The notes beneath the pieces are model-generated. The model worked only from the letters and a program-made list of their open reading frames with translations. It did no database searches and was not told where the DNA came from. Below are positions 1,873-49,149 of a stretch of DNA of 64,000 nt, piece by piece (positions within the stretch are counted from its first letter, which is position 1; each line of letters opens with the position of its first letter). Both the position numbers and the translations under genes were made by a program. Source of the stretch: Hypanus sabinus (lineage: Eukaryota). The stretch spans positions 131,130,001 through 131,194,000 of the forward strand of contig NC_082714.1 of the NCBI RefSeq assembly GCF_030144855.1. The letters run 5' to 3'.

Positions 1873-4814
1873 TAATTTCACTTACCAGACTCAGCTGACG
1901 AGTATGAAGTGATGCTGTCAATGGTGAAGGTAATATTCCTGCTGATAACAAGCGATCCCTTTTCTTAGGCTGATAAAAACTCATTCCAGTTAACAACAAA
2001 ACTATTTCTACCTGCTTGTTTTAACCAAGCTCATGATGTAAGCTGTAGTCTCACATTTGAAACCGCAAACAAGGTCAATTGTTAGCTTGTGGATTTGGTT
2101 TAGGTGATGGCTCAAGGAGCAGATTCCTCCTTTTGTGGGTTCATGCCAGCTATATTATTCTCAAATGTGTCATTTTACATCTTCTGAAATCTATATTCTT
2201 TTCGTCCCAAATTATGTGTTGATTTAAATTGCCATAGCAGGACTTATCCATCTAATCCAAGTAATAAGGGTGCATTAACTAATACAAGAAAACCATTTCA
2301 AAGCCTTTGATAATATTTGCTACCATCAGGGATTATGAAGGGACTGGGATACTTCAGTTTGAAACTCCAAGCCTAAACAATTAAGAAAGGTTACATATTC
2401 TGATTCTCATTGCATCCCTACCATCAAAACTCTTCTTTTTTTTATTAAACTAAAGCTTCAAATTATTAATACTGGTAAAGATTAAGCCTTCTTAACATGC
2501 CTCTTGGAATTTGTCAGTGGTAATAAGACTCAATCATTAAATATGCGGCCGCATCATTTAAAAGTGTTCAGTAAAAGCACTGTGAAGACACTGAATTATT
2601 CTCTTACCAGTGCATTTTTCAGCATAAGTAGCAGTAGGTTCCAAACTGGCATAAATGCAGGAAATTTGTGATTAACCTTGATTTCAAGTGAATGTAGTAG
2701 GTCAGGGGCAGTTTCTGCAATTATAGTAATTCCCTTACAGCTATATTTGCCAGTGTACTGCAGATACCACAGGAATATTATGAACAGCACAACCGATGAT
2801 GTAATTCACTTTATGGATCATTGGCTTTTTGGAGGCATTTGATATATTTATTTCACAATGGCACAAGTCCTGCAAAACTCAGAGATTGCTTTATTTAATG
2901 GTCAGAAATGCTGGATAGTTTGATATCTCTTTGGACAGTACTCTCCACAGTGTGTATGATGGAAAAGCTTGCATGTTTGAACTCCCATGAAGCATTTCAG
3001 CCTGAAACATTGACTGCTTAAATCCCTCCAAAGATACTGCTTGAGCAGTTGATTTTTGCCGACATTGTGTGTGTTGTTCTGCTACGCTACATTTGATACT
3101 GTATTATGGTTGAATCCATAAATTAAACATCCGAGTTACCCACCTAATCTGTGCTGCACAGAATGGTCTCCGAACCCTGTGCAGAGATCTCTTCAAGGGT
3201 CTGGTGCTAGGCTCCTTCATGTGCATTGCAATTGTAAGAAAGGATTCTGGTATCGATGTACTGATCATTTCTGCATAGACATTCATCGTTTTCTTCTGTG
3301 TGTTAAGTAAGTGAAGTCATTATCTGAGACTTCTGTAGTAGATCTCCTGTGCAATGGCTAGCATTTTCATTTTCCTCTTACCCTGCATTGGCTGGAACTC
3401 ATTTGTGCAGTGAATTATTTTGTGACTATCCTTCCTCACAGGTAAACACCAACGCACCTTATGTCAGTATCTTAGCTTGCAGCTGAATGTTAAATCAAAT
3501 GATAGGATGACCTCACCCTCACTCTGTTTCTTGTCATTCTACCTCTTCAGGTTGCAGTTAATGGCCTTCTGAAAAGAGAGAGTCGTAAAGTGTGTTGAGG
3601 TTTGGAAAAAGCAAGCTTACACTACCTGGAGCTTAGAAATCATGAAATTTGTCTCGATGCTGAGACATGCAGCTAATGAACAACATGGTTCAATCTGGTT
3701 GCCTGTAGCAACCTTTATAAGACCAAAGATAAGAAATTCTCCATGCTTTCTGCATCTAATCAAATTGGTCTATTTTCATCTATGGCCGTTTTCAGAATCT
3801 ATCCAACAGATCTAAATTGGGAAGTGCATCGTTAACTCAAAATCACATAGAAAAGCAGAAAAAATAGATGTAAAAAGAGCTGGATTTAAACCAAGACAAA
3901 TTAAGCTATTGGGAAATTTAACTAGTATCCACTGGTGCTATCTGCCAGCCAGTGGTGTAGTTACGCCCGCACCAAATTTCAAGGTGAGCAGTAACAGGTT
4001 GAAATTTAGCTGGCTTCTTGCACACTTTCCATTCATGCTGGGTTGAGCATCGAGCTCACAAGCCTGGCTCGTAAAAAAACAGACAAAAGTGCTAAAGAAA
4101 TGGCAAGGTTGCTGCCCGATGTGCAACAAGGCGCAGAAATGAACAAGACTGGTGCAAGAAAACCTGAATATTTATTATTACATGAATGACATAGAATCGC
4201 ATAATACATTATTAGCTGCATTCTGGAGCCACAGAAGGATCAGCATGTCATTCTGTCTTTTTTTCCTAATCAGGAAAAGTGTTACAAAATTGGTTATTTT
4301 ATTGAATGCCTTCAGTTAATAATTACATTGGTCATGTCTTTGTTTTTAACTAAGATCAAGAATTCTAGAAGCACGTGGATATAAGTAATAAAGATCACAA
4401 AGTTGTCAAATTTGCTTAAAAATCCAGGTAATTCAGGAAAGGAAACCCACCACTTTTTTCATCTCTGGCCTACCTGTGACCACTGTCCCACATCATCATA
4501 ATCATCTATCAAATCGTTCATTTCTTGCACAAGGTAAGTGCAAAAAACAGCAAAATTTTCAGTATTAACCTGCAGTACTATTAAGTTTCTTGGGAAAATT
4601 TGGGTTGGCAGTAACATCAAGATCCCCAAATTTAATTTTTTTTTGGGACGTTGTCTGTAGCAATGGACAATCCTTTCACGGCAATTGTCTTTCCTTTGTA
4701 GCAGGCCATCAAGGATCGGGACTCTGAACTTAACTTTGATTAATTTAATTCTTCTTTGACTTTGACTCTAATTTCAAACACAATGATTTTTTTAATAATT
4801 TATGTTAAGAATAA

Positions 4815-5608
4815 TCTCTAATCTGCTAATTAACTTTGCCGATGACACGACATTGATTGGGCTAATCTCAAGCAATAACAAGGTGGCCTACAGGGAAGAA
4901 GTCATCTCTCTGACACAGTGCTGTCAAGAAAACAAACTCTCCCTTAATTGTCGCAAGAACAAAGGAATTGGTTGTGGATTACAGGAGGAATGGAGACAGG
5001 CCAACCCCTATTGATATCAATGGATCTGGGGTTGAGAGGGCAAACAGCTTCAAGTTCCTTGGCATCCACATCACCGAGGACCTCACATGGTCTGCAGAAG
5101 AGCACCCCTTTCACCTCAGACAGTTGAGGAAGTTTGGTGTGGGCCGCCAAATCCTAAGAACTTTCTACAGAGGCACAATAGCCTGACTGGCTGCATCACT
5201 GCAGCCTTAATCGTTGGATTCTGCAGACAATGGTGCAGACAGCCCAGCGCATCTGATGCTGAATCATTAACTCCCATGTTTCAGGACATTTACCAAGACA
5301 GGTGTGTAAAAAGAGACCAGATCATCGAGGACCCGCGTCACCCCAACCACAATCTATGCAGGCTACTATCATCTGGAAAATGGTACCACAGCATAAAAGC
5401 CAGGACCAACAGGCTTCAGGAGAGCTTCTTCCACCAGACCATCAGACTGTTTAACTCACACTGACGTGAGTGTATTTCTATGTTACATTGACTGTTCTAT
5501 TCATTATAAATGACTATGATTGCACATTGCACATTTAGATGGAGACGTAAAGATTTTTACTCCTCATGTATGCGAAGGATGTAAGAAATAAAGTCAATTC
5601 AATTCAAT
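4815..5608 (+). mobile_element. Rex1/Babar-like LINE, 5'-truncated RT C-terminus and 3' UTR
   Basis: FADDTTLIGLISSNN..AYREEV, FKFLGIHITEDLTWS; ends with AATAAA and a (CAATT)n tail. Confidence 0.85.
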
Positions 5609-7221
5609 AGGAAGTAGTTCTGGGATAACATCAACATTTTACAAACTGAAGAAATAAGGCTTAACAAATGCAACTTTGTCAAGACTTGTGTGCAAGAGCG
5701 GCTGACATTTTCAGGTCACATTATTATTTTTAGAAATTCTTGGCCATAAATATTAATTTTAATTGAACATGTCTAACTGTCAGAGTAAAGAGAAACTATA
5801 AAAATGAGTTTTGAAAGGGGACATAGTATTTACAATATTTATATCTTGGCATTTAATATTGAAAGAGTATCCAAGCTTCATTCATACGCTTGAGCGCATA
5901 ATCTAGAACGGCATTCCATTACTGAGGGAATGATGTATTGTTGGGCATGCTGTTGTTTAAATGTTTGAAATGGGAGCTGTTTTAACCTGATTGTTCCAGA
6001 CACTATAAAACTCCCATGGCACCAATGAAAATGGGGCATGGTTCTTCAGTGCCCAGATCGCATGTCTTTTCCGAAACACATGTCAGCGAAATCTTATTAA
6101 TTGCTCAGTTACCTCATTCATGCTCACAGGATGCTGGTGTCTTGGAACAATTGCTACTTCCACCTGCATTACAACTTCATTTGCAAATTTACAGAGGCAG
6201 CAAGAAGCGTAGACAAAGATCATGGATGGGAGGTGGATTTCCATGATGAGCTGAGCTGTGTCCACTACTCTTTAATTTTCTGCAAAGACTAAATATTTAC
6301 AAAATAGATAGTTTAAAATAAATGAATAGAAGATGAAAAATGCACATGTACAACATTGCAAGCTATAATAGACAGTCTCGCAATACTGTGTAGAACTAGT
6401 GCTCAGGGTATCAATGAATACAGTAGAAGCTGAATGCATTTGTTTTTCTTCCTTCCTATGAGTTTAATATAGTTATCAACAATTTCTTCTTAATTTTAAA
6501 CAAATTTGCACATTTCCTACTGAAGATTAATGCTCCTGGAGATGATCTAAAACCAGTTTTGCAGTGCTGGTATGTGCTAGCTATAGTAACCTCTATTTGA
6601 TAAGATCAAAGAAAAATTATGTAATTCCATTGCGCATCCACATGAAATGCATATCTTGAAACCAATATACTATAGTAAAATTCGGACAGGTTCATCCTGT
6701 TAACTTGCAATTCTTAGATGCCTGGAATTTTACAAAAGTTATATTAGAATAAATGTGCCTTATAATCACTATCTCTAACAAGAGAGTCCTACCACCTCTC
6801 CCTAATATTCATTGGCATTATTATTACCAAGTCACCCACTTTCAATACCTAGGTTCCAGTATTGACCAAGAAGTGTGCAAGAACAGATTAGGAAGTGGGT
6901 ATCTTTTAGTGAGTGACCTTTATCTTGACACCTCAAAGTCTTTCCACATTTACTAGGCACAAGATAGGATTGTGATGTAATGTTCACCACATGCCTGGAT
7001 GGGCAGAGCTTCAACAGTGCAGAAACTTGATGCCATCCTCAGTGACGCAGCCTTCCCTAAGAATACACTGTGGTTGGCTTTTTCATGCCACAGTGATAAT
7101 GCATAACCAAAATCATTATCACCTAGATTGATAAAGCTTCAGATACAGAAGAGCAGCTGCTACCATTTCCCCACCAAATTACACAGCATTCTGATTAGTA
7201 TCTTCACCCTGTTGGTGAATT

Positions 7222-43880: not shown

Positions 43881-44342
43881 TGTCACAACCATGAACTCTG
43901 CTGTGGAATCTGCATGTCCTCACAGGTGAGCTGCGGATCAAGTTTGGCAATCACGCTTGTGCGTATACACGTACCAGCCAATTTGCGTTTCATTGTGGTG
44001 GTATTTAACTTCCTTCCTCTCGTTCCAGTCTTCTTGAGACTTGACCAAAAGCATAGCAACATCTATGCTCCATGCGTACCTTCCTTGTTGTTCCAGGAAA
44101 GAAGACTACCATTTAAATTGATACTGTAAAGGAGCAGTATTCATTTAATATTAAGTTACTGCTTCCTAGCTGCAATGTCAGCATTAGCTTTCAGTTTGAG
44201 AGTTTTGGTTAACGGCCCAGTTGGCCTAGTGCTTATTGTTTTCCCTTTAAATTTGCACAGTTCTTATGAAAAGTCAGTGAGCTGTTCTTCTGCTTCAGTG
44301 TCTCTCTCTCTGCACGTGGGCCATAACCGCACACTTGTATCA
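43881..44342 (+). repeat. 5' LTR of chromovirus
   Basis: TGTCA...TGTATCA; homologous to 52990-53415; gag ATG follows at 44362. Confidence 0.88.
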
Positions 44343-44894
44343 GCAAGTCTCAAACACTAAAATGGACCCACTGAAGAGAGAACAGTTGATCGCAGCCATG
44401 AATTTCACTGGGCAGGTAAGAAAGATGCTAAAGGCAGTAAAAGCTGGTTTGGCTGATGTACCTCGTACTGTGTGATAGCTACTGGCAGAGTGGTAAGCCC
44501 CTTCCAAATCAAAGTTTGTTGGTCAGATGGAGGAATTAAATTTAATGGAGTCTGAGTTTGCTGAATTGGCTCATGAAGTGCGACAATTACTTTCAGATTG
44601 GCAACAGGAAGAATAGGTGTCAGCACTTGCAATGACTGTTCGGTGACTCACCACAGACAGCCATACTCAGGTACAGTTGACCTTCACTAATCTGACTACC
44701 TGTAATCTGGTTTCTTCAATAATCCGGCACAAATTTCGAATTTTACACGCAACTGTAATTTCAAATTTCCTGGGCCACCGTACCAATCTGTTGCGCATTG
44801 TTTTGGTTGCGCTAGATCTGTTCATGTGTTGGCACACTCTTGTAAGCACAGACCGGTGATTCCTGCTTGTTTTCCTGCATTTATTAATGTCATT

Positions 44895-45025
44895 TGCGTG
44901 AGGCGCGGCGATCTGGCACCCACCGTCTCACCCGCCAGTGGCAGGGGAGCTGGCACGCACTGGGTTGGTCCGCCTGCTGTCAGTCACGCACTGCCCTCCG
45001 GCATCACTCTGTTCTCTCCTGCCTA
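44895..45025 (+). other. probable ITS2 3' end (rDNA spacer) fragment
   Basis: GC-rich block directly contiguous with the 28S 5' terminus; identity inferred from position. Confidence 0.55.
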
Positions 45026-45050
45026 CTACCTCAGATCAGATGTGGCGACA

Positions 45051-45082
<32 letters not shown>

Positions 45083-45192
45083 GAAGCAGCTAACAAGGAT
45101 TCCCTCAGTAACTGTAAATGAAGAGGGAAGAGCCCAGTGCCAAATCCCCGGCCACCTGGCGGTCGCGTGAAATGTGGCGTATAGAAGACCTC
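45026..45192 (+). rRNA. 28S rRNA 5'-end pseudogenic fragment (~165 nt)
   Basis: ACCTCAGATCAGATGTGGCGACACGCTGAATTTAAGCATATTACTAAGCGGAGGAGAAGCAGCTAACAAGGATTCCCTCAGTAAC..GAAGAGCCCAG..AAATGTGGCGTATAGAAGACC follows the vertebrate 28S 5' end, with CpG-type substitutions. Confidence 0.95.
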
Positions 45193-46469
45193 CTTTCTCC
45201 AACTTCTGCTTCTGCTCACCCAGATGTGCTGCCATCAACATCGACAGTTTTTGAAGAAACTGTTGTACCAGTCTCAGCACTAATCCGGCACTCCTCAGGT
45301 CCCAATAGTGCCGGATTATAAAATGTTGACCTGTAGCAGCCACTACTGCTCTTGCTGCTGCACTTCAGCAGCAGTAGCCTTCAGCCGGTACAGTCTCACT
45401 CCCAGCATCTATATACATCTTCCTCTGTAACAGAGATATCAGCCTCAGCTCCTAATGCCTTAATTCCCTGAACAGTTTCCAGATCAGAGCTGAGCATTCC
45501 TCCACAAGACAGATACTCTGGTAATCCCAACAGCTGTAGGAACTTAATACCCAGCGTAAGCTGACTTTCCAAGTCCTGCCATGTCAATTTAGAGATGATG
45601 CGCGTAAACTGTCTTACCTGGTGAATCTTTTAGATGGACCCTTACTCAGCCTGTTCAATGAGAACAAGGATTCTCCCCCCCCCCCACCACAGCCCAGATC
45701 TTCCATAAATTCATGATTGATTTCAAGAGTGTTTGATCTTCCAGTATGAGGTCATGTGGCAGCCCACCAACTCCTGGACTGATGCAAAGGGAAAGAAACA
45801 GAGAGGGACTATGCAGTAAAGTTCCACACACCTGCGATGGAGCTGGGGTTGCATGAGAGATACCTCATCACTGCTTTCCAGCATAGACTGATAGCAGGGG
45901 ATTCAACATGAGATCACTCTGCATGGTGTGCTGGGCAGTCTAGATGGCCTGGTAAATCAATTGGCAACCAGGCAATTGGGTGGCCCAGTGAAAGAATGTT
46001 CTAAGCTTCCTGCTCTTTAGATCACCGTCTGCTTTCACTCTCTCCCTCATCAACCAGTACCCATTCCATGGAGGAGCCTTTGCAAGAGGAATGAGATTGA
46101 TGAAGAAGAACAGATCTCTGCATCTTCTGTGGTGATTCATAACGTCCCAACCACAAAGTAAAGTCCCAAGCACCCAGTATAAAGGGATATCCATTAGCAT
46201 GAAGGGGAACTCTGATGTGTCAATTCTCCCAGCAAGCATCTTCTCCTAATCACATAATGCTCCCGGCTTCTTTGTCATGGGGATCCCAGACCTCTGAGCT
46301 TCAGGCATTTACCGACTCCAGTGCATCCAGGTACATCTCTCTGGCTCAAAGTTGTAGAATCCTGACTCAGCATTTGAGAGAGAATATCATTGTCAAGACT
46401 CTGAACGGTCAGCCTATGGGCACTGGCAAGATCCACCTTTCCACAGGAGCCCTCCAGCTTTACTTCTAT

Positions 46470-49149
46470 TGTGGCGGCCCACACACGCCGGACTTGAACC
46501 GCCATCGGGAGCCGTGGACAGACACATGGTAGCGCATTTGGAACGACCCACCCGGGGTGGACCTTCCGAGGGCAGACTGACGACACGTCCGCCCAGCGGG
46601 TCGCAGGGGCCCATGGGAGGGGAGATTTTGAATCAGTAAAGGCATTCTGAGTTCAGCTCTCTCTACCTCCGTGTGTTTCTTTAGTGGCACATTGTGCGCA
46701 ACGACATTGGCAACTCCTACGTTGCAGACAGTATCTGGAGCCGGCAGCTCAGTGACCAGCCATGAGTTCGAGCAACTCGCACAGCGCGGTCTCTCTGAAG
46801 TTCCCAACTTTCTGGGCCACTCAGCCCCACGTTTGGTTCGAGCAGGCTGAGGCCCAGTTCAGTATCAGAGACATTACAGCCGACGCCACGTGGTTCTACT
46901 ACGTGGTCAGCACGCTCCACCAGGAGACGGCAGGCTGGATCGTCGACTTCCTACGCCAGCCACCAACAGAGGACGAAGCTTAAGGTGCTCCTGATCTGTA
47001 CCTTCGGACTCTCCCGCCACAAACGGGTGGCACAGCTCCTACACGTGGACACATGCCATCTGAGCTCATGTATGACATGCTGGCGCTCATGGACGGCCAT
47101 AAGCCATGCCTTTTATTTGAACAGTTGTTCCTCGAGCAAATGCTAGAGGACATTTGCCTCCTCCTCGCGAGTGAGGATTTCAGCAACCCACGCAGTGTCG
47201 CAGCTAAAGCAGATGCCCTTTGGCAGAGCAAGCAACATGGAGCAGCCTCCACTGGCCTAGCCACGATCACGCACCCCAAAGCCCAGGCCCCGCAACCGAA
47301 GCCATCAAGACCCACGGGGGAAAAGACGAAAGTTTGGAACAATGGTGTTTCTAGCACCAAAGATGGTGCTCAGGCATGTGCCGTGCTGTCCACCATGTGC
47401 TTTTCCAGGAAACGCCAAGGCCAGCCGTCGCTAATGGCTACGATGGCTGGCCACCGAGACAGCCTCCTGGACCTCTGGGTCCGACACTCCGGGCGGTGCT
47501 TCCTGGTAGACACCAGGGTCAAAGTCAGCGTAACCCCCCCCTTGAACTTGGAAACTCATAACGCAGTCCCAGGCCCCGAACTCACTGCTGCAAACGGCAC
47601 CAGTATTTGGACGAACAACCCACGAATTATCTCACTGCATTCAGGTTCAGCCGTTTCACTTGGACTTTCACGTTGGCAGCGGTGTCACAGCCACTACTAG
47701 GGGCAGACTTCCTAAGAGCCAACTGCCTCCTGGTCGGCCTAAAAGGCTGGCATTTGGTCCACACTGAGACGTTCCAGACATTCCAGCTCGGAGAAGCCAA
47801 GCCAAGCCAAGCTTCGGAGAAGCCCTCCACCTGGATTCTGTGACCCTCTCGGGTAACGAATTTGCAAGGGTGTTGGCGTAATTCCCCTCCACAGTCACCC
47901 TGCATTTCTCCATGGCCGACCCCAAGCATGGCGTGCAGCACCACATCTCCACACAAGGACCGCCGCTGCATGCCCGAGCTCTCAGGCTCCCACCCAACAA
48001 TCTCCACCTCGCTAAGGAGGAGTTCTGTAAGACAGAAGAGATGGGAATCATACACCGCTCAGACAGCCTGTGGGCATCCCCACTGCATGTGGTGCCCAAG
48101 TCCGCAGGAGGATGGAGGTCCTGTGGAGACTACAGAAGGCTCAATGACACCACAACTGCTGACAGATACCCGGTACCCCACATCCAGGACTTCACGGTGA
48201 ACCTGCACGGAGCAACCATCTTCTTGAAAATCGACCTGGTCAGGGGATACCATCAGATCCCAGTGCACCCCGACAACGTGCCCAAGACAGCCCTCATCAC
48301 GCCATTCGGCTTGTTCAAATTCTTGCAGATGCCTTTTGGTCTCAAGAATGCAGCCCAAAGTTTCCAAAGGCTCATGGACTCGGTGGGACGCGGCCTGGCT
48401 TTCATTTTCATTTACTTGGATGATATCCTGGTGGCCAGCAGTTGATGTACCCATGGCACTCACAGTCGACGCTTCCGACACGGCAGTTGGCAGAGTCCTG
48501 TAGCAGCTCGTTGAGGACCAGTGGCGACCACTCCCTTTCTTCAGCCGGCACCTACGGCCACCGGAGGTGAAGTACAGCGCCTTCGACAGAGAGTTGCTAG
48601 AGCTGTACCTGGCTGTCCGGCATTTCCGGTACCTCATCGAGGGAAGGGAGTTCACAATGTATACGGACCACAAGCCCCTCACCTTCGCACTGGCCAAAGT
48701 ATCAGACCCATGGTCAGCTCGGCAACAGAGGCAGTTGTCCTTCATTTCAGAATTCACCACGGACGTCCACCACATTGCAGGGAAGAACAACGTCGTCACT
48801 GACACACTGTCTCCCCCCGCCTCCACTCAGCAGGCATATCGTCCTCAGGAATAGACTACACAGCAGTGGCGGAAGCACAACAGTCGCATACCGAGCTCCC
48901 AGCTTACCGCACCACCATTTCAGGGCTCCAGTTGGAGGATGTCTCCATTGGCCCAGCAGCAGATTGACTCCTGTGTGACGTGTCTACCGGCAAACCCCAA
49001 CCCGTGGTACCAGCAGCATGGAGGCGCGGGATGTTCCACACAGTGCACGACCTGGCCCACCCGTCCATCCATCAAGCTGGTAGCGGACAGATTTGTCTGG
49101 CACAGTTTGCGCAAACAGGTCGGACAATGGGCCAGGACCTGCGTACACT
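46470..49149 (+). mobile_element. CsRn1-like Gypsy retrotransposon, 5' part (LTR, PBS, gag, PR, RT, RNase H, integrase N-terminus)
   Basis: LTR 46470-46706 after CTAT; degenerate tRNA-Trp PBS TGGCAACTCCTACG (vs TGGTGACCCCGACG); AVSLKFPTFW..WFEQAEAQF; FLVDT; WASPLHVVPK..GDYRRLN..MPFGLKNAAQSFQR..YLDD; YSAFDRELL..YTDHKPL. Confidence 0.9.
47912..48445 (+). pseudogene. pol: reverse transcriptase of the CsRn1-like element; RT C-terminus/connection deleted after YLDDILVASS
   Basis: 177 aa ORF with RT motifs, followed immediately by RNase H (ALTVDASDTAVG). Confidence 0.88.

Follow-up and report, generated by a model that had tools for sequence, protein, structure and literature searches.

That cut-and-paste transposons can capture host DNA is well established for plants, while vertebrates offer scarcely any documented cases. 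Most known Pack-type capture is that of the plant Pack-MULE, Pack-CACTA and Pack-TYPE elements, with Turmoil-1 as a case in C. elegans (PMC8903248, PMC6379663, PMC2572040). In mammals, MER6 is described as a Tigger-type MITE that spread a SINE V-domain (PMC6887750). In Table 2 of a 2024 review, Pokey/mPok of Daphnia, a piggyBac element, is the sole DNA transposon with rDNA-derived sequence, and the 28S example in that review is SINE28 (PMC10946416), a retroposon of low copy number that derives from the 3' end of 28S, bears A-rich tails and makes variable duplications (PMC4994717).

The element considered here lies in the 64-kb stretch of DNA that we analysed (the window). Our preferred reading, to which we give a probability of roughly 0.8, is that it is an old copy of a non-autonomous Tc1/mariner-superfamily family whose interior holds an ITS2-28S rDNA piece and which was amplified by cut-and-paste. 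As in Pack-type elements, host chromosomal DNA (here including 28S positions 1 to ~175-180) lies between transposon ends and has spread by transposition, without a transposase of its own and with capture junctions common to the copies. In contrast to Pack-type elements with their protein-coding exons, however, this family transports a junction of rDNA gene and probable spacer on a Tc1/mariner-type element that duplicates TA, within a vertebrate-like genome and with a single capture at high copy number. MER6 provides the parallel of a pogo/Tigger-related MITE that gained a foreign module and underwent burst multiplication, although its cargo is a SINE domain and not rDNA. Pokey likewise comprises a DNA transposon and MITEs that bear rDNA-unit sequence, but it carries IGS repeats, has its target site in 28S and makes TTAA duplications, whereas the family described here carries 28S and probable ITS2 sequence, makes TA duplications and sits at unrelated AT-rich sites. 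SINE28 is also a dispersed repeat with a 28S fragment; it differs from the present element, which has moved by cut-and-paste and holds the 28S 5' end and probably the adjoining spacer. Our searches, which covered the literature, found no TA-duplicating transposon with an ITS2-28S junction; the family may already be annotated in repeat databases.

Boundaries and layout of the element

Read directly, the element proper extends over 660 bp, from 44674 to 45333, and is flanked by TA at 44672-44673 and TA at 45334-45335. The left edge reads CTCAGG TA CAGTTGACCTTCAC... at 44672, with CAGTTGACC as the first element letters from 44674, and the right edge reads ...ATGTTGACCTG TA GCAGCC... at 45335, with GTTGACCTG as the last element letters up to 45333. 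The interior has four parts, namely an AT-richer left arm (44674-44898), a GC block (~44899-45025), a 28S-like segment (45026-45200) and a right arm (45201-45333). The individual features are as follows.

44672-44673, no strand: left TA of the target-site duplication; alignments of other copies begin at 44671/2 with unrelated flanks outside, and empty host paralogues have one dinucleotide
44674-44699, plus strand: left terminal inverted repeat CAGTTGACCTTCACTAATCTGACTAC; 22/26 against the family consensus terminus
44703-44730, plus strand: left subterminal TAATC(C/T)GG motifs (44703, 44720), presumed transposase-binding repeats; from a motif scan
44731-44898, plus strand: left arm, non-coding, confined to the long cargo-bearing form; depth 1,800-17,600 against 25-200 in the flanks, no Pfam domain
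44899-45025, plus strand: GC-rich block, probably the ITS2 3' end, with an 11-nt private deletion after 44975; from base composition, family copies and a contig of run X17
45026-45200, plus strand: 28S rRNA gene positions 1 to ~175-180, CpG-decayed, ~85-88% identical to present-day 28S; Rfam RF02543
45201-45280, plus strand: proximal part of the right arm, with an internal deletion after 45280 in the window copy; many contigs bridge 45200
45281-45307, plus strand: right subterminal region, which includes a direct TAATCCGGCAC at 45281-91; common to the short form from 45278 on
45308-45333, minus strand: right terminal inverted repeat, reverse complement CAGGTCAACATTTTATAATCCGGCAC; 20/26 against the family consensus terminus
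45334-45335, no strand: right TA of the target-site duplication; behind 45335, 21-43 contigs per run have loose ends, with an agreement of ~0.4

The boundaries are proved by paralogous host sites that lack the element. One empty-site joint runs from 44657 to 45335 with 15 replacing letters (runs X1, X2 and X7) and another from 44663 to 45336 with 10 replacing letters (X2), and both show a single dinucleotide where the window has TA-element-TA. The TA is therefore a true 2-bp target duplication, and the TA-bounded segment of about 660 bp that had been proposed from the letters alone is real. This evidence is much stronger than the reading-frame argument made in the earlier note, according to which excision restores the frame of the host sequence. 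Removal of 44674-45335 does give a continuous ...HTQ V AATTALAAA, but stop codons occur 8 codons upstream and 14 codons downstream, and because they lie so close on either side the restored frame says little by itself.

Complementarity between the left and right ends of the window copy is weak. The 26-nt family terminus, CAGGTTGACCTTCACTAATCCGGCAC, was obtained from other copies, its source being a loose end at 45318 in run X5; there an alternative right end, ...GATTAGTGAAGGTCAACCTG TA, mirrors the window left end almost exactly, with one extra G, and thereby yields the consensus. Measured against this terminus, both ends of the window copy are imperfect CAG-starting inverted repeats, in agreement with their first description, and they are accompanied by the subterminal repeats also noted then. 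Two direct occurrences of the motif TAATCCGGCAC, at 44720-30 and 45281-91, are joined by an inverted one at 45308-18, and a decayed copy is present at 44703.

The insertion lies in host sequence (44300-44671 and 45336-45700) that is moderately repeated, stop-riddled and gag-like, with depths of 15-720 compared with ~15 for single-copy contigs in X2. Paralogues of this host sequence are ~80-97% alike, and some are without the insertion. A Pfam search of the stop-free flank pieces found no gag domain, and so gave no support to the more specific label of chromovirus gag that this sequence had been given. Further along the plus strand, at 46756-48854, stop-free pieces match DUF7041 (5e-16), RVT_1 (2e-17) and RT_RNaseH (4e-11); on these matches, this is a predicted retroelement pol region, at least 1.4 kb downstream of the insertion.

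A dispersed family with common cargo junctions

Logan contigs of four DNA runs, representing four organisms, were placed on 44300-45700 at 80% likeness. Their depths sum to 25-200 in most flank bins and to 1,800-50,000 within the element, and in all four organisms the rise, 20- to 500-fold, occurs exactly at 44672 and 45335 (the step is located between the bins that end at 44675 and 45333). Loose ends stack before the element at 44671/2 and behind it at 45335, with 10-43 contigs per run and an agreement of 0.40-0.45. The flanks outside both edges are unrelated and AT-rich, with 17-43 different ones in each run, and both TAs fall inside the shared part. Taken together, the depth steps and the many unrelated flanks identify the element as one copy of a dispersed family with recurring terminal repeats, as the earlier note had supposed. 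The ratio of arm depth to the depth of single-copy-looking flank contigs is roughly 500-1,000, an order of magnitude only, as the figure derives from summed contig depths, which do not equal copy numbers.

Several searches for further copies or for the true rDNA were negative within their scope. In the 64-kb window, blastn detected no second copy when queried with the element, the family terminus or the short-form core. Metagenome scans with the left junction pattern and the clade-type 28S 5' end gave 0 matches, as did a viral-contig scan with the short-form core, and a protein search with a 90-aa internal ORF, aimed at spurious gene calls on other copies, found no match. As a separate observation, single-copy-depth contigs of X2 and X7 (44300-44699 and 44300-44701) share ~97% of their letters with the left flank and reach 28-30 letters into the element. 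An overlap of this length, below the 31-letter bridging rule, is suggestive only, and would fit organisms B and D carrying the same insertion at the orthologous place.

The family comprises forms of different length. Cargo-free MITE versions, which the earlier note had raised as something to look for, do exist: 44730, the last base in common, and 45278 are linked by a ~40-nt core (TGATTATGCTTAATGTGATCCTTCTGTAATTCGGCATTTT or variants of it), to give a ~155-bp MITE with the same ends as the long form. In organism C (X5) the short form is dominant, with a terminal depth of ~30,000 compared with 3,000-7,000 in the arms. Other long copies, in the DNA runs and also in X15 and X16, run on after 45280 with CAGTTCCTGATGCATCACTCATTTTTCAAG, whereas the window copy skips straight from there to the last 53 bp. 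Since most long copies continue where the window copy jumps, the latter is an internal-deletion derivative of a longer form of ~1 kb. The depth profile of X5 has one further feature, a drop to 180-850 over 45099-45239 (the 28S part and the proximal right arm) from 3,200-7,200 in the left arm, the GC block also being higher; this could be due to a subfamily without that part or to a filter acting on conserved sequence.

Both cargo junctions are shared by other copies. The junction between the left arm and the GC block is bridged by contigs covering 44777-44970, 44811-44970, 44796-44975, 44792-44964 and 44842-44971, and the junction between the 28S segment and the right arm by contigs covering 45007-45214, 45053-45219, 45077-45257, 45096-45277, 45103-45280 and 45007-45208; these contigs have differing mismatch counts, and all four DNA runs are represented among them. 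In the presumed RNA runs, contigs from X15, X16 and X18 cross 45200, and a single 302-nt contig of X18 spans the left arm, GC block and 28S segment (44861-45141). Bridging contigs thus come from at least six organisms, in DNA as well as in RNA runs, and neither junction has a well-supported loose end. It follows from the bridged junctions, and from the lack of loose ends there, that the rDNA-like cargo belongs to the family, as had been predicted, and did not enter the window copy in a secondary event. We did consider such a one-off insertion into a single MITE copy, with which the presence of only one copy in the window agrees, but it is contradicted by the distinct bridging contigs in at least six organisms and by an arm depth beside the cargo as high as in the remainder, and we regard it as highly improbable.

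Equally remote is an origin as an rRNA-derived retroposon of the SINE28 kind, or as an orphan rDNA relic with inverted repeats on either side by chance. Such rRNA-derived SINEs exist (PMC4994717), but this explanation is contradicted by the lack of an A-rich or simple-repeat tail, by a duplication fixed at a 2-bp TA and not variable in length, and by the unrelated flanks. In addition, the inverted termini are also present on the cargo-free short form, and SINE28 stems from the opposite, 3' end of 28S. Nor does the insertion pattern resemble that of elements that target rDNA, such as Pokey and the R elements, the flanks being a gag-like repeat here and unrelated AT-rich DNA elsewhere.

The TA duplication, the CAG termini shared across the family as inverted repeats, the absence of coding capacity (no Pfam domain in stop-free pieces), the many short dispersed copies and the cargo-free short form support assignment of the element to the Tc1/mariner (ITm) superfamily as a non-autonomous member, or MITE. 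Tc1-like and pogo-like elements alike have TA duplications and termini that start with CAG. Within the superfamily, the family looks pogo/Tigger-like: its terminus appears to resemble that of Tigger2, which starts with CAGTTGACCC, and that of Tigger3/MER44, which carries a TTATCCGCGG motif at a similar distance from the end. The same duplication and termini would fit a family outside pogo/Tigger, mobilised by a Tc1-like transposase; this alternative is possible, but the apparent resemblance to the Tigger2 and Tigger3/MER44 termini makes it the less probable one, and we keep to a tentative pogo/Tigger-like affiliation. Text searches of the literature with the terminus sequences, including the Tigger2-like terminus, returned unrelated primers only, and the 64-kb window contains no autonomous partner or transposase.

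The 28S segment and the GC-rich block

A permissive local scan aligns model positions 1-~180 of the Rfam family LSU_rRNA_eukarya (RF02543) with 45026-~45200, at 74 bits and an E value of 2.8e-17; a whole-window Rfam scan at gathering thresholds returned nothing and missed this truncated match. The segment therefore begins at position 1 of the model, and GC-rich DNA runs directly into the 28S 5' end, as described before. Many of the departures from the LSU consensus are changes of CpG to TpG or CpA. In two presumed RNA runs, contigs with summed depths of 1e5-7e5 (X17) and 4e3-1.2e5 (X18) cover ~45042-45200, depths that fit mature rRNA. These rRNA contigs are ~12-15% different from the window, for example at 10 of 67 and 10 of 83 letters. 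Because they and the element part ways after 45200, where the rRNA contigs read GACGACGCTCGGGGGCCCAAGTCCT (22 contigs, agreement 0.99) and the element enters its right arm, we place the 3' breakpoint at 45198-45200. An extension of 28S homology past this point into the right arm was considered and rejected, as no rRNA contig matches there at 80% likeness and the Rfam posterior probabilities are low.

The conserved 28S segment GCTGAATTTAAGCATATTACTAAGCGGAGGA (45053-45083), which the earlier note had called intact, is so up to its last base: no high-depth difference from true rRNA occurs before 45083, which is G here and A in rRNA. The 5' domain of 28S evolves slowly, so nearly all of the 12-15% divergence would be decay of the window copy, and the insertion may be tens of millions of years old. 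Over 45051-45187, X16 and X17 also contain a few low-depth contigs whose loose ends, GGGCGACTGAAAGGGGATGAGCCCAGCGCA and CGCACGCATATGCCGAACTTTCACACGGAA, show them to be 28S 5' ends from other organisms, probably food, parasites or contamination of the samples.

The GC-rich block is harder to identify. Its G+C content is 67% (44895-45025) compared with 41% for the window. The family version, given by the loose-end consensus at 44923 and 44975, has its CpGs intact and includes 11 nt, TCTCGCCCGCC, that are absent from the window copy; in X15, 117 letters stand in place of the 109 that the window has for the block. The dip in depth over 44911-45004 is explained by indels and by independent decay of CpGs.

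The earlier note had suggested that the block is ITS2, and one contig from the RNA run X17 provides a candidate for its non-transposon counterpart. This contig, with a depth of ~464, agrees with 44923-44975 except at three letters, at each of which it has G or C, and its 30 visible upstream letters, GCGCCTGAGGCGCGGCCGCCCGGCACCCGC, resemble the window back to 44899 (TGAGG...). Before 44899 it reads GCGCC, whereas the window and the family consensus (X5) read TTGCG; nor did the contig align with the left arm. It thus looks like donor sequence, and its departure from the transposon puts the left cargo breakpoint at 44898/9. Its depth compares with 3.5-27 for transposon-bearing transcripts in X17 and is about a thousand-fold below the summed 28S depth, a ratio that would be expected for a pre-rRNA spacer.

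With the 28S match starting at model position 1 directly after the GC block, contiguous rDNA is the simplest source of both, and an ITS2 origin of the block is probable, the evidence on colinearity with the donor being this one candidate spacer contig and its ~80 visible letters. The alternative is a chimera of unrelated GC-rich DNA with a 28S piece taken from the mature 5' end, for example through use of mature rRNA cDNA as repair filler. Such an event would leave a 28S piece starting precisely at, or close to, the mature 5' end, as the Rfam alignment indicates, and it would also agree with high-depth rRNA contigs that stop at ~45042, with none upstream. The rRNA contigs are absent over 45026-45041 and over the last 50 nt of the GC block, a gap in which conserved sequence was filtered and the window copy has many indels. 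Against a chimera stand the abundance of the X17 contig, its match to the block, its non-transposon sequence upstream of 44899 and its extreme CpG richness, in the manner of a pre-rRNA spacer, as well as the abutment of a GC-rich block on 28S position 1 that contiguous rDNA would produce. We therefore consider a chimeric origin unlikely and favour ITS2 as the probable source of the block.

Proposed history and implications of the family

We suggest that, early in the history of the family, a contiguous piece of rDNA was copied into the interior of a deleted, non-autonomous element. This piece would have consisted of about the last 125 nt of ITS2 and the first ~175 nt of 28S, and its likeliest route of entry is template switching during excision-gap repair, that is, transduplication as in Pack-type elements. 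A transposase encoded elsewhere would bind the TAATCCGG motifs at and near the ends and mobilise the chimera in trans, which may have been amplified in this way to roughly 10^2-10^3 copies in each genome of several related organisms, with the cargo as a passenger in neutral decay. The window copy would have inserted at a TA within a repeated, gag-like and decayed stretch of retroelement, and would afterwards have lost ~340 bp from its right arm and 11 nt from its GC block while gathering many CpG mutations.

If a second, unrelated cut-and-paste family of the lineage likewise captured a 28S/spacer junction and was amplified, more than chance would be suggested: rDNA might be a preferred repair template or rRNA-like cargo might aid spread, ideas that we hold to be doubtful. 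The first might have its cause in elements that often sit in or near rDNA; under the second, the cargo might, for instance, blunt small-RNA silencing or help transcription.

The family places one rDNA gene/spacer junction at hundreds or thousands of sites. Its dispersed 28S-like fragments would be expected to receive LSU-rRNA annotation and may draw rRNA-derived reads. Estimates of rDNA copy number based on the first ~175 nt of 28S could be disturbed by them, and probes for the ITS2/28S border may find off-target sites. If the GC-rich cargo is indeed ITS2, then the family consensus keeps an old ITS2 end, which could help to date the capture.
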